A stretch of 64,000 nucleotides of DNA. Source: Parasitella parasitica NRRL 2501. Taxonomy: Eukaryota; Fungi; Mucoromycota. The stretch covers positions 78,182 through 142,181 of the forward strand of contig MU619304.1 of NCBI GenBank assembly GCA_025201805.1, read 5' to 3'. How positions within the stretch are numbered: the stretch's first letter is position 1; each line of letters opens with the position of its first letter. Below the pieces are notes generated by a model. It ran no database searches. It saw only the letters and a list, made by a program, of their open reading frames with translations, and had not been told where the DNA came from. Shown in pieces: positions 58,039 to 64,000 of the stretch. A program made the translations under genes and the position numbers.

Positions 58039-60358
58039 GTAAGTTGGTAGCGACAATGGTCCTGTATTTTTTTTTTTTTTTTTTTCCTCGAGAAAATATA
58101 AATGTATTTGCGTAGCGTGAGACAGTTCTAGATGCATATTGTGAGTCAAGCTCTGGTTTCAAGTCTCTGTTTACTTACATATAGAAATATATAATATATT
58201 TAAAAAAAACTCCTTTTGCAAATAGCGTTTAGTATCATTATCCATCCGCTCGAATGCCAACTGCTTACCTGAACCAAAGTTAAAAAAATATATATTATAT
58301 ATGTAAATTACCCAAAAAGCTTTCTTGTCTGTGTGTTTACTGTCTTGTGCAAGAAAAAAAAGCTCTTTTGCTTTGTATCAATTGATAAAAACAATAAAGA
58401 AAAGGGGAAGCAGGCAAAAAAAGAAGAAAGAGAGGTGAGAAAAAAAATAAGGATAAAAAGAGAGAGAGGAGAAGAAGGAAGAGAAGAAAGAAATGATAAA
58501 AACGAGGGGAACATAGTGCTATAGCAGCATACCAAAATTCTTTTTTCGGAATGCGTAGATGATATTGTATTCTTGCGTTACATGCGCCATTAAAACAAGC
58601 AGTTTGTGGTTACATTTTCCAAATGTAACTGCGTTGATGCAATTCTGTATTGATTCGAACTGTTCGTCATGCCTTGAATATTTTAAAACTTGTAATATGT
58701 AAATATATGCTTTTGTTCTATAAAAAGCATCGACACACTTGTGATTAGCTCGGCCATGTATGTAGCACTGCGCCCTCTCTCTTTATGTAGATGGGGACAC
58801 ATGTAATGTATCTATACACGTCTCTGCATTCCTAATTTGCAATATGTTTCAAGTATGTATGTAGGTGTATTTGACGCAAAGATCACACCCTCATATATAG
58901 ACATATAAACATTTACAGCGCCCTGGGGGTTTTATGTTTCTATCCTTTCTCCTAAAAGAAAAAAGCACATATTTAGCAAGCCTATATATACATCCTTCTA
59001 TATTGAGGGGTTAGTTTTGACCAAGGGGTAAAGCAGAGTCGTTTACATTACAGCATGTAGCAAATCCGAATATCCAGATATGTATGTGGAGAGTGCATGA
59101 ACGTTTGATTACGCTTTTTCCTACACGATATCTGATCAAAAGCTTAAAAATCAAGGCGCCAAATTTTGTAATTACCGATGCTTTGTTTATGAAAAGCATT
59201 CATGCGTCGTTCATTTGAAGTGATAGAGTGTGTGCATTGGGAGCTCCTTTGACGTCGATGACATTTAATCATTTAAGCAAATACTCATTGTCACTGGAGC
59301 TCAAGCATTCTCACTGTGCGGTGCATATAAAAACTGTGCTGGGCATTCCCTTTCCATCTTCCTGGATATCACACGAGGGCAGTTTGTTTCACAGAGCCGC
59401 TCTATTTCAAAACATAAGGTTTCTGTCAAGATCGCATTTGCAGCGAAATTCAGAGCCTGATCGTTACACGTCTTTTGATGATCGATTGCGGCGTTTGCAG
59501 CACTATGTGATGAGACGAATGATCTGCACATGATACTGAATCTTATTGAAGGTGATACAATTCTTGCGTAGTTTTCTGTTTTACGATTAAAAGCGTTTAT
59601 TTCATGATGCTTCAATAAACAGTTATTAAGAATGAATCGAGTAGCCATTAGGGTTTGCATACGTATTAGAAAAGTGAACACTTTTGCTTAAAAATACATG
59701 AAAGTCAAATTATACTCACCATGTCCTCAATGAGAGAGAAACACATCTGTCAATTATACTATTTGACGTAGTCATGGTACTACGGAGAGCATCTATTACG
59801 ATGTATCTTGTACTCTTATTTTATAAAACATGGTAGATGAACAGAACAGTTATTGAGCTTTCATGTTCAAGTTCGCATTTATTGCTTTTTGAGCAACTTG
59901 TCTTGCATAATCATAACTTCCTGATCAAACTATGCTTATAGTTAGGATGTTAAATTTCATGAGCCATTAGTCTGTTCTACTCTGTAATTATATATGTACC
60001 AAACACTTTCTTTCTCAGTATCTCAATCAAAAACTCATTGTAACAGCAAAAAGGCTTACTTTGCAGTGTGATTCTGGCATCAAGTTATTAAACAATATGG
60101 CTTTAAGGCATGCATAGGCTTCTACGCTGATTAAATTTTGTGCAAATTACACATTTTAGCATAATGAACACTATTTTGAAGCACTCCCATTCATAAAGAG
60201 CCATGAAGCAAGACTCATTGAATATTTTACGTGTTTCATTAAAACAAAAGGCAATAACAATGTATCCGGCATACAAGTTTTGAGCTATTATAAATCTTCC
60301 ACGAAAGACGAAATTGCAAAAAGGTATTCTTTTTCTTTCATTTACACACAATCGCAAA

Positions 60359-62143
60359 ATGAAGCAGTCTCCTTGGAACACGCTACCTTTAGAAGTGTGC
60401 TGCATTATATTCGAACAAATTGAATCCGTAACAGAATTAGCCAACTGCCGATTAGTTTGTAAAATGTGGAACCCTCTTGCCGAGAAAGCCATGTTTGGTC
60501 AGCATTTGGAGTTCAGAAGAGCTGAATCCATTGTCAAGTTTATTGCTATCTTGAAGTCGAAACCAGCAGCAACTCGGTTTATCAAGTCAATAAGTCTATT
60601 TGACCCTTACCACAAGTTTCTGCAACTACAAAAAGAATTACTCGACCTGGCACTGACGCCAAACATCAGATATTTGCGAGGTGAAATGAGCGAGGAGCTA
60701 TTTGGCCATTTATTATGCATTGCTCAGCAATCACCCAGCAAATTCGACAGGTTACAGGCATTACCAAAGTTGAATACAATAGCCAGCGGCAAATTTTCAG
60801 AAATGGGAAGATGCATATCCTCCATAATGGGAACGGGCAAATTGAACACAATGAGATCCAAGTATTTTGATGCAATGCTTTATTTTAAAAAACCCTTGAA
60901 AGAACTAAATGCATCGTTGTCACTGTTCGAAGTACCTGGATTATGTGATTGTATCTTCAATCATCTAGACGAATTCACAAGCTTAACCAAGCTCGCATTG
61001 GATTTTTATGGTTTTCCTAACTATGATATGCAGTCTAGGTATTTCCTTGAGCTGGAGATGATTCTTAACCAGTGCGGCACGCTACAGACTCTGAAGCTTG
61101 ACCTGCTAGGCTGGGGCGTCAGTCATTCAATGGAGAAGGTAGAGTTCAAGGAATGGCTTTCAAACAACGTGGTGCCAGTTCCAAGTCTTCATACAATTAT
61201 ACTCGATCGAGCGTCCAGTCCACATATGCTTGAGTATGTTGTACACAAGTACCCCAAAGTCTCCAAAATAATTATCGAGAACTTTAATACCTGCACTGAG
61301 CGCGTTCTGGATGCCATCAAAAATATAGACACGGTTCAATTACTTACAAAACAAACAATCATTGAGGGATCCTTCTTAGAATTATTCCGCAAGATGAGGA
61401 GTAAGACGAATCAAATGCAGATCCTAGGCACCGATGATCCCAATAAGGGTGGGCCATTACTAGATATAACCAAATGCAAGAGCACTGGAATTACAAAGTT
61501 TGTTATAAACACAATGTCCGCACCACAACTTATTTACGAGGAGATCATATCACTAATTGGCTCAGTAAACTGCTTGGAGACAAGGTATATAGGCTACTGC
61601 TGTGAGCGTGAGAGGGGCAAACCATTGTTAGACAAGCTACGCGACGTAGTCCCATTTGATAGCTTAGACAAACTAGCTTGTTTTAAGTTACAATGTGATG
61701 GAGAAGAGATTAATGCAAACATCTGTGAAAAATTAGCTTCTGCTGCTCCGAATTTGAACCATCTGACTATCAATGCTAGCTGCTCTTATGAAAAAGGTCA
61801 TCATGTATACTTTCCTCGTGCAGATCTTGAAACTGTTTCCATATTCAGAACACCTGGTTCCACAAAAAAGTATCTTCAAGAAGCTCAAGAGGTCCTCCTG
61901 ATAATAGAAAAAACAGGTGCTCCGCAAATGTCCTATTACCTCCTAACGCCTGGAGCAAACGGGCTACCTTCTCGCAGCCAGCAGATCTCCAAGCAAAGTC
62001 TTTCAGAGTATCCTCACAAGCTACCAGTGATTCGCATTGCGTTTAAATCTTTGAGTAACCTGAAAATTAGCCTTGGGGCCCTTTTATTAGAAATGAAGTT
62101 TGACCCTGAGGCTCGAACTGAGCAATCCATTGTTGATTGTTGA
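60359..62143 (+). CDS. F-box protein with LRR-like region (intronless)
   Basis: WNTLPLEVCCIIFEQI..LANCRLVCKMWN F-box; long open frame. Confidence 0.8.
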   Translation: MKQSPWNTLPLEVCCIIFEQIESVTELANCRLVCKMWNPLAEKAMFGQHLEFRRAESIVKFIAILKSKPAATRFIKSISLFDPYHKFLQLQKELLDLALTPNIRYLRGEMSEELFGHLLCIAQQSPSKFDRLQALPKLNTIASGKFSEMGRCISSIMGTGKLNTMRSKYFDAMLYFKKPLKELNASLSLFEVPGLCDCIFNHLDEFTSLTKLALDFYGFPNYDMQSRYFLELEMILNQCGTLQTLKLDLLGWGVSHSMEKVEFKEWLSNNVVPVPSLHTIILDRASSPHMLEYVVHKYPKVSKIIIENFNTCTERVLDAIKNIDTVQLLTKQTIIEGSFLELFRKMRSKTNQMQILGTDDPNKGGPLLDITKCKSTGITKFVINTMSAPQLIYEEIISLIGSVNCLETRYIGYCCERERGKPLLDKLRDVVPFDSLDKLACFKLQCDGEEINANICEKLASAAPNLNHLTINASCSYEKGHHVYFPRADLETVSIFRTPGSTKKYLQEAQEVLLIIEKTGAPQMSYYLLTPGANGLPSRSQQISKQSLSEYPHKLPVIRIAFKSLSNLKISLGALLLEMKFDPEARTEQSIVDC

Positions 62144-62767: not shown

Positions 62768-63045
62768 CCATTGGCGGTGATGTAGATTACAGTTGACGAA
62801 ACTAGGTTGGGCCAATGAAAATAAATTTTGGTCATTTCCAAATTGAGTTGGGACACGATTACAAAAATGGGTCACGAATACGAAAATGGGACAACAAGAT
62901 GAAAATGGGACATGAGTACGAACATGGAGATAATGTTAGTATCTTTCAGAAGAGTCAGAATTGTTACAGCTTCTTACCTGCAATATCTTTAAGTTGCTGA
63001 CTCACCGGAGTGAGCAGCAACAACCACATTGGAGGTGGCGGTATG
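62768..63045 (-). ncRNA. Predicted Fanzor omegaRNA (scaffold overlapping the CDS 3' end, candidate intron, TIR tip and flank-derived guide); boundaries uncertain
   Basis: Hairpins GUUGCUG-CUCAC-uccg-GUGAG-u-CAGCAAC and CCAC-cuccaau-GUGG in the last codons; TnpB/Fanzor omegaRNAs are encoded at the element right end. Confidence 0.5.
62849..62924. repeat. Four tandem 19-bp subterminal repeats
   Basis: tgggacacgattacaaaaa / tgggtcacgaatacgaaaa / tgggacaacaagatgaaaa / tgggacatgagtacgaaca with exact 19-bp period. Confidence 0.9.
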
Positions 63046-64000
63046 TCTTTTGAAGAATTGGGGGCGGCCATTTCCACACCAAATTGATGTGGCAATGGTG
63101 AGCATGTTCTTCGAGGCCATGGCATCGCGATTCCAGTAAATATTGCAAGTTTTACACTTCAATACCTGATGGATTTTGGTTTCTTTGTTGTCATGGATTA
63201 TCTTGAAATTCTCCAGATCTTCTTTGAGACAATTGTTGCAGATCTATGAATAATCGGTTTTAGCTGAAAGTGCAATATGTGAATTATGTGTGTTTTTTCC
63301 TTAATAACCTTCGATGTTTTGAACTCATTAATATCTACAAGTAATAGTTCACCAATTCTTTCTCTTGCTTGTAGTTGCTTGTATATTTTGTTCGAGACAC
63401 CGTGTCTTAAACCTCTGAACTTTATATGATCTTTGTTTTTTAATCCGTCACCAAAGACCACCAGAGGCATCTTACTTTTGTCACATACTTCAAAACAAGC
63501 CTTGTTTTTTCTGTTATAAGTTACAAAAATAACAGTTAGAGTTTACTGAATTTACGAAAACTAGAGAAAAGTATATACCTCTTGGACCTTGTAACAGTAG
63601 TGATGGGTTTTCTTTCTCTGGGAGCACGAGTACAGCTGTGGCAATTTTTTCTTCTTCTTTTTCTGTTCGCCCTTGTCTTTTTTCTCTTGCCCTTATTATA
63701 CTTCTTTCCGCCATTTATCAGGATATTGACGCTTTCTTCGATAACTTGTTGAGAGCTAAGGTAGTTCAACCATCTGACTTTGGAAGTATCAAAGCCGTAG
63801 AAATCAAACAACGTATTCATGTGCTGCAACATGTAGGCTACGTACAGAACAAATTGCTCTACAGATGCAGTTTTAGGCGAGGGAATGTCTGTTTCAATCT
63901 TTTCAATGCCTAGTTCTTGTTTGTGTTTCTGTTGCTTTTTCATTCTTGTTACACTTCCACCCATATTATAGTATTCGATTGAGGACAAGCGACGTATGTC
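62989..64000 (-). CDS. Fanzor1 (TnpB-like RNA-guided RuvC endonuclease), C-terminal half, two introns; 5' part outside the window
   Basis: Exons 64000-63579, 63510-63309 and 63243-62989 splice in frame with no stops: RRLSSIEYY..IETDIPSPKT..FYG..PLVVFGDG..RuvC-II DINEFKTSK|ICNNC..LKCKTC..RuvC-III WNRDAMASKN..GRP. Confidence 0.9.

Follow-up and report, generated by a model that had tools for sequence, protein, structure and literature searches.

A Fanzor1 transposon of Parasitella parasitica with a spliceosomal intron across its right terminal inverted repeat, and a candidate guide RNA scaffold joined by splicing

Part of a Fanzor1 gene, carried by a DNA transposon, occupies the minus strand at one end of a 64,000-nucleotide stretch of Parasitella parasitica NRRL 2501 DNA (contig MU619304.1, positions 78,182 to 142,181), referred to here as the window (Table 1). 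About 650 nt beyond the right end of the element, an F-box gene of 609 amino acids lies on the plus strand (60314-62143). The first-pass annotation had proposed that two GT-AG introns, 63578-63511 (phase 2) and 63308-63244 (phase 0), restore a single frame, and both are indeed missing, to the base, from two sets of sequence contigs presumed to be RNA (X9 and X16) and from raw reads of a related species (X24). Because the GT-AG introns are lost exactly, X9 and X16 are taken as cDNA. The second donor, GTTATT, had been judged weaker than consensus, yet it is in use, since the RNA sequences of all three sources skip exactly that intron. The frame running from 64000 to 62989 is open over three exons, free of stops and frameshifts, and contains the motifs that had been read in it, namely INEFKTS with the RuvC-II Glu (63332-63312), the CNNC (63240-63229) and CKTC (63156-63145) halves of a CxxC..CxxC zinc finger, and WNRD with the RuvC-III Asp (63135-63124). 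The rearranged RuvC-II Glu stands 7 residues ahead of the first zinc-finger Cys and WNRD follows the finger, which is a feature of Fanzor1. A Lys/Arg-rich stretch located between RuvC-I and RuvC-II (63600-63710) is likely a nuclear localisation signal.

The window ends at the start of a run of 1675 N, inside which exons 1-3 and RuvC-I of the window copy fall. Extension of the contig past 64000, suggested as a check, was accordingly informative through the siblings only: four sibling copies carry RuvC-I (DPG) 45 nt outside the window, and the window copy reads N there. The siblings contain six coding exons, totalling 821 codons. Long runs of N, nearly all multiples of five in length, occur in the window copy and its sibling loci, inside almost every copy, and look like scaffold gaps. 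The description of the window copy as recent is a fair one, the copies being 93-98% identical, but its intactness and activity are unproven because RuvC-I and exons 1-3 fall in the run of N. In the siblings, exon 2 also holds a conserved zinc-knuckle-like N-terminal stretch, CxxC..H..C (L032:1800-1855); exon 2 of another sibling, L047, gave no match in Pfam.

Table 1. Features of the Fanzor1 element in the window (positions of the 64,000-nt stretch).
Feature	Position	Strand	Evidence or remark
Fanzor1 exon 4, 3' part (from just after RuvC-I to the basic insertion)	63579..64000	-	open frame; SpuFz1 match, E 0.0035
Coding intron, 68 nt, phase 2, GT-AG	63511..63578	-	absent from X9, X16 and X24 RNA sequences
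Exon 5, RuvC-II Glu (codon 63326-63324)	63309..63510	-	open frame; colinear with cDNA-derived P0116
Coding intron, 65 nt, phase 0, GT-AG	63244..63308	-	absent from X9, X16 and X24 RNA sequences
Exon 6, coding part: C4 zinc finger, RuvC-III Asp (63126-63124), stop codon	62989..63243	-	SpuFz1 match, E 5e-4
Stem-loop 1 of candidate omegaRNA, overlapping the last codons	62993..63021	-	z -3.7; covariation in 11 loci
10-nt linker and 5' arm of stem 2 (TGCAG), up to the splice donor	62978..62992	-	conserved in 11 loci
Non-coding GT-AG spliceosomal intron, 176 nt, most of the right TIR	62802..62977	-	junction in RNA contigs X9 and X16
Right TIR, ~135 nt	62790..62922		89% identical to left TIR at G000:C68:144581-144715
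Last exon within the element: 12 terminal nt and TA duplication; 3' arm of stem 2	62788..62801	-	RNA junction, conservation
Host flank, predicted 15-nt guide of the window copy	62773..62787	-	X9 record 4, contiguous with the spliced junction, 0 mismatches

The window gene is a Fanzor1, with six exons and about 821 amino acids as predicted from its siblings. The spliced model was compared exon by exon, with the database proteins P0027, P0078 and P0116 as stand-ins for longer pieces, and the profile and structure searches that had been set as a test of the assignment returned Fanzor1, with SpuFz1 as the best match in sequence and fold. P0027, 91% identical to the window exons, matches SpuFz1 at 6e-12 and PpFz1 at 0.0025, and a family profile search reaches SpuFz1 at 2e-22. 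The structure model of a full-length relative, P0116 (pLDDT 78), matches the three solved Fanzor1 structures (SpuFz1, E 9e-20; PpFz1, 2e-16; GtFz1, 1e-12) far ahead of TnpB, Cas12 or Fanzor2; this fold, like the TDG motif (WED) found in the siblings, belongs to relatives rather than to the window copy. Pfam searches with single exons found little, PF07282 being below the cut-off for exon 6 alone and above it for relatives, and PDB sequence searches returned nothing useful for exon 5 or for a stretch of upstream exons taken from a sibling. The nearest named proteins come from Mucor circinelloides (88-99%), followed by those of other Mucorales; judged from these identities alone, the host would probably belong to the M. 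circinelloides complex.

The element that carries the gene measures 3.75 kb, with TIRs of about 135 nt and TA on both sides, in agreement with the TA flank already noticed, which on the right lies at 62788-62789. The TIRs end in CAG..CTG next to a TA duplication, as in Tc1/mariner (IS630) elements; the right TIR might, on a weak indication, have lost AG relative to the left one. The genome contains about 25-30 copies, and exact matches to the ends number 24 paired and 8 single. Compared to the window copy, siblings show pN/pS of 0.16-0.57, well below 1, which points to purifying selection. The upstream part was read in five copies, of which four are disrupted (nonsense in L032 and L041, a deletion in L024, a lost donor in L023) and only L047 is open, in exons 1-5. 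The check on the left TIR and a transposase gave a divided result: the left TIR was located 3.75 kb away, but none of the 150 DDE_3 matches listed lies inside any TIR pair, many interiors being N. L032 and the window copy, which together span the whole element, contain a single gene. The transposase not being seen between the TIRs, the element reads as non-autonomous and probably depends on a transposase supplied in trans. A DDE_3 gene located beside the Fanzor gene of L044 was considered as the transposase of the element and rejected, a left TIR enclosing both genes not being found.

Other sequences of the same kind are scattered over this genome (G000), in which the C-terminal half of Fanzor gives at least 115 exon-level matches belonging to many families. 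A second TIR family, the ends of which differ by one base (TACAGTCGACG), forms elements of 3.8-5.9 kb in C9, C39, C42, C56, C61, C64 and C72, with weak Fanzor matches inside those of C56, C61, C64 and C72. Short TIR pairs of 180-250 nt (C6:288606 and C28:263675) may represent 'ghost' copies devoid of a protein gene. Immediately beyond the left end of the window element lies a TA-flanked miniature element of about 135 nt (L021:4795-4930, in C68), whose terminus matches the start of the published ROr-1 TIR and which adjoins a Tc1 DDE_3 fragment (C68:145240-145497).

The first-pass account of the gene was right about the two coding introns and left out a third intron, 3' of the coding sequence, which stretches across the TIR. 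Transcription reads through the gene and the right TIR into the host flank, the three introns are spliced, and the resulting junction is joined to the flank. This is seen in the loose ends of the RNA contigs, where the transcript jumps from 62978 to 62801. X9 record 4 joins 13 nt of the upstream exon to the terminal piece and to the flank of the window locus itself, without mismatch; in X16 record 3 the terminal 14 nt follow the junction and lead into a foreign flank; and X9 record 7 ends exactly at the TA, the point where different flanks would branch. Contig depth over 62929-62975 is zero in both X9 and X16, and the X24 raw reads give a thin coverage of the third intron. The intron starts with GTAAG and ends with CTAG inside the TIR; a predicted branch point, CTAAC, occurs 38 nt in and is followed by 139 nt free of AG (chance ~3e-4). 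Its donor context is kept in 23 copies. Rfam gave no match at the gathering score, and the intron is of the GT-AG type, distinct from the self-splicing group I intron of an IStron. L048, an intron-free cDNA of another family (789 amino acids, ~70% DNA identity), carries the joined end directly. Its spliced Fanzor transcript continues for 1.7 kb (L048:2450-4184) into a downstream host ORF starting ~40 nt past the end of the element, and a possible effect of this read-through on the downstream host gene can be envisaged.

The organization of this 3' end was compared in 11 genomic loci from four genera (Mucor, Rhizopus, Cokeromyces and Mycotypha), comprising the window copy, one more copy of the same family and nine loci of other families, from M. 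saturninus, M. flavus, R. microsporus, R. delemar, Cokeromyces and Mycotypha. The loci share a hairpin, a linker of 10-11 nt, T(A/G)CAG (AACAG in one locus), a GTAA donor, and AG located 6-14 nt before the end, donor and acceptor being kept in all 11. The outer three pairs of stem-loop 1 are Watson-Crick in 33/33 cells, with compensatory changes on both sides. Once spliced, every one of the 11 ends folds as two stems, the second of which consists of 5-7 bp (-4.1 to -7.6 kcal/mol) and closes at the TA, except in L052, where it lacks one pair. The unspliced TIR end reaches only 0 to -2.5 kcal/mol and folds no better than shuffled sequences (z +0.6); only the spliced form gives the two-stem fold in every locus. 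Because the loci are related, shuffle counts over them are not probabilities. A two-stem scaffold ending at the TA is thus supported by conservation. Together with the precursor transcript, this conserved fold suggests a candidate omegaRNA at the right end of the element, which would include the target-site duplication in its scaffold and take its guide from the flank. In four loci, an internal AG immediately precedes GTAA, which suggests that the third intron would be removed there in two steps; as for the branch point, these recursive sites are predictions from sequence.

The flanks of the element are asymmetrical. On the left, T precedes the TA in 18/18 copies, A occurs at -4 in 13/18 and a pyrimidine at -5 in 17, whereas the right flank is random, with A after the TA in 4/19 copies (left vs right, p 5e-7). 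This left-only bias is the pattern by which the TAM of Spu-1 is marked, so a TAM of about YATTA is predicted for the present family. TAM-dependent, RNA-guided DNA cleavage may be assumed by analogy; the present analysis shows a one-sided flank motif. The filled site would be spared because GTA, and not TTA, precedes the guide. A second TAM-adjacent target for the guide of the window copy was not found.

Taking into account these different features, the host spliceosome probably assembles the Fanzor guide scaffold from a split precursor, and the spliced RNA would guide homing. The Fanzor1 gene travels in a Tc1/mariner-type TIR element, and a single transcript runs from the gene through the right TIR into the host flank. 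Upon removal by the spliceosome of the coding introns and of the 3' intron, which holds nearly all of the TIR, stem-loop 1 and the TGCAG arm are brought beside the terminal 14 nt, and the predicted fold is a 7-bp stem 2 ending at the TA and directly followed by the flank. By comparison with Fanzor1 and TnpB, the nuclease would bind the RNA and trim it to a scaffold of ~65 nt and a guide of ~15 nt; as in TnpB homing, it would then cut the empty site (TAM ~YATTA and flank) after excision, and repair from a filled copy would restore the element. The intron would in this manner allow a long transposase-binding end to coexist with a compact guide RNA. The guide function attributed to the spliced RNA agrees with the junction found in two RNA assemblies, linked to the flank of the window locus, and with the same join in the cDNA of another family. 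Part of stem 2 could be a coincidence, since exons usually end in CAG before a donor and the transposase dictates CTG-TA. The published PpFz1 RNA, which works in vitro without splicing (PMC11423790), also speaks against a spliced guide.

Splicing could also be real but optional, the guide being an unspliced RNA of ~240 nt in which the intron loops out to let TRCAG pair with the terminal CTGTA, while the intron merely tidies the 3' end of the mRNA, e.g., by removing TIR repeats that could trigger RNAi. Fanzor1 tolerates large insertions beyond stem 1, as in GtFz1, and some X24 reads are unspliced; against this, the intron is missing from two RNA assemblies, and splicing is needed to produce the short loops and the pairs that close them. 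In Mycotypha, the donor is located 3 nt later, the acceptor is also shifted to a later position and the spliced stem is capped by a GAAA loop, a double shift which indicates that the TRCAG arm is kept for pairing and not just as donor context. In L050, a lone G between AG/GT sites, predicted to be a 1-nt micro-exon, completes a 7-bp stem. Optional splicing is accordingly regarded as an unlikely explanation. Still less likely is a working guide made of an unspliced donor-side hairpin and a fixed, intron-derived guide, which splicing would destroy or switch as in bacterial IStrons. In the present family, CTGTA occurs 8 nt after the donor and forms a hairpin as stable as the spliced stem, and the PpFz1 RNA recovered in yeast has such a shape; this hairpin is missing, however, in 9/9 loci outside the present family, no TAM-adjacent site in the genome matches the fixed guide exactly (three sites with one mismatch vs one control match), and this guide could not direct homing to the own empty site of each copy. 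That the family is dead, with transcripts arising by read-through from decaying copies and a cryptic intron, as the four broken siblings and the transposase not seen inside the element might suggest, is very improbable in view of the purifying selection, of the open exons of L047 and of a non-coding intron conserved over four genera.

The nuclease alone belongs to a known kind, the fungal Fanzor1 transposons, and the split, spliced guide precursor is the new part. Fanzor1 in TA-flanked Mucorales elements goes back to 2013 (PMC3627910), and introns in Fanzor coding regions have been known since 2023. A literature search, with subscription papers mostly outside its scope, found no spliced Fanzor guide and no intron within an omegaRNA. 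If the guide assembled by splicing holds true, it would represent a CRISPR-like guide RNA with a scaffold that the host builds through pre-mRNA splicing, would offer an explanation of how Fanzors came to occupy transposons with long terminal repeats and yet kept their guide, and would tie the targeting of a nuclease to the control of splicing. In addition, where omegaRNAs of intron-rich hosts were mapped from 3' conservation or from their expression in yeast, PpFz1 included, they may have been mis-defined, and exact compact scaffolds and TAMs could be predicted for a large set of fungal Fanzors.

Among the characterized systems, SpuFz1 of the Spu-1 element of Spizellomyces punctatus (PMC10432273, PDB 8GKH) is the closest in sequence and fold. 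Spu-1 also possesses a TA duplication and TIRs without a transposase in cis, its conserved bases occur only upstream of the left TIR, and its two-stem RNA ends at the duplication (PMC10432273); the guide role of the flank belongs to the Fanzor1 architecture (PMC10432273, PMC10711439). The present family resembles it in the TA, the TIRs, the transposase not seen in cis, the one-sided flank and the predicted two-stem RNA. In contrast, Spu-1 consists of a single ORF with TIRs of ~30 nt, a contiguous omegaRNA and the TAM CATA, whereas the present family exhibits six exons for ~821 amino acids, TIRs of ~135 nt, a split candidate scaffold and a predicted TAM of ~YATTA.

PpFz1, from Parasitella parasitica itself (PMC11423790, PDB 9CF0), and ROr-1, ROr-2, ROr-3 and MCi-1 (PMC3627910) are likewise Fanzor1 of Mucorales, carried by TIR elements with TA flanks. 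The PpFz1 clade differs from the present family, matched at E 0.0025 only, which may also be devoid of the FRI-type insertion; the available part of the 2013 sequence file does not contain the present TIR (PMC3627910). The PpFz1 omegaRNA, defined by expression in Saccharomyces cerevisiae and described with a second stem of four pairs only (PMC11423790), reads by eye in its middle as hairpin, linker, TGCAG and GTAAG, i.e. the donor motif, and shares with the ROr-1 end and the present family the order hairpin, short linker, TRCAG and GT. The start of the ROr-1 protein resembles PpFz1. Read in the same way, the ROr-1 end has this hairpin at a depth of ~170 nt within the element, followed by TACAG/GT, by an internal AG/GT and, 8 nt short of the terminus, by AG, and the published consensus ends of ROr-1, ROr-2 and ROr-3 all possess donor, acceptor and spliced stem (PMC3627910). 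ROr-2, which ends in GTG, has TGCAC in place of TGCAG as its 5' arm, a change on both sides of the intron, again by eye. The texts of PMC11423790 and PMC3627910 make no mention of a spliced RNA. Among the MuDR-type and other Mucorales Fanzors, the MCi-4, ROr-4 and PBl-1 ends (PMC3627910 supplement) exhibit the donor motif just after the gene, and MCi-4 shows AG 8 nt before its terminus. On balance, we lean to the view that Mucorales Fanzor1 guides, those of the PpFz1 clade and possibly of the MuDR-type included, are encoded as separate pieces that the spliceosome joins, in some families via micro-exons and recursive AG/GT sites; on this view, the RNA published as the PpFz1 omegaRNA would represent a fragment left unspliced, the guide of which comes from the intron.

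The IStrons, which combine a group I intron with TnpB (PMC10690162), resemble the present element in that splicing and guide RNA overlap at the right end of the transposon. They are bacterial and self-splicing, and in them splicing excises the scaffold and so works against the guide (PMC10690162), whereas in the present element a spliceosomal intron appears to build the guide scaffold.
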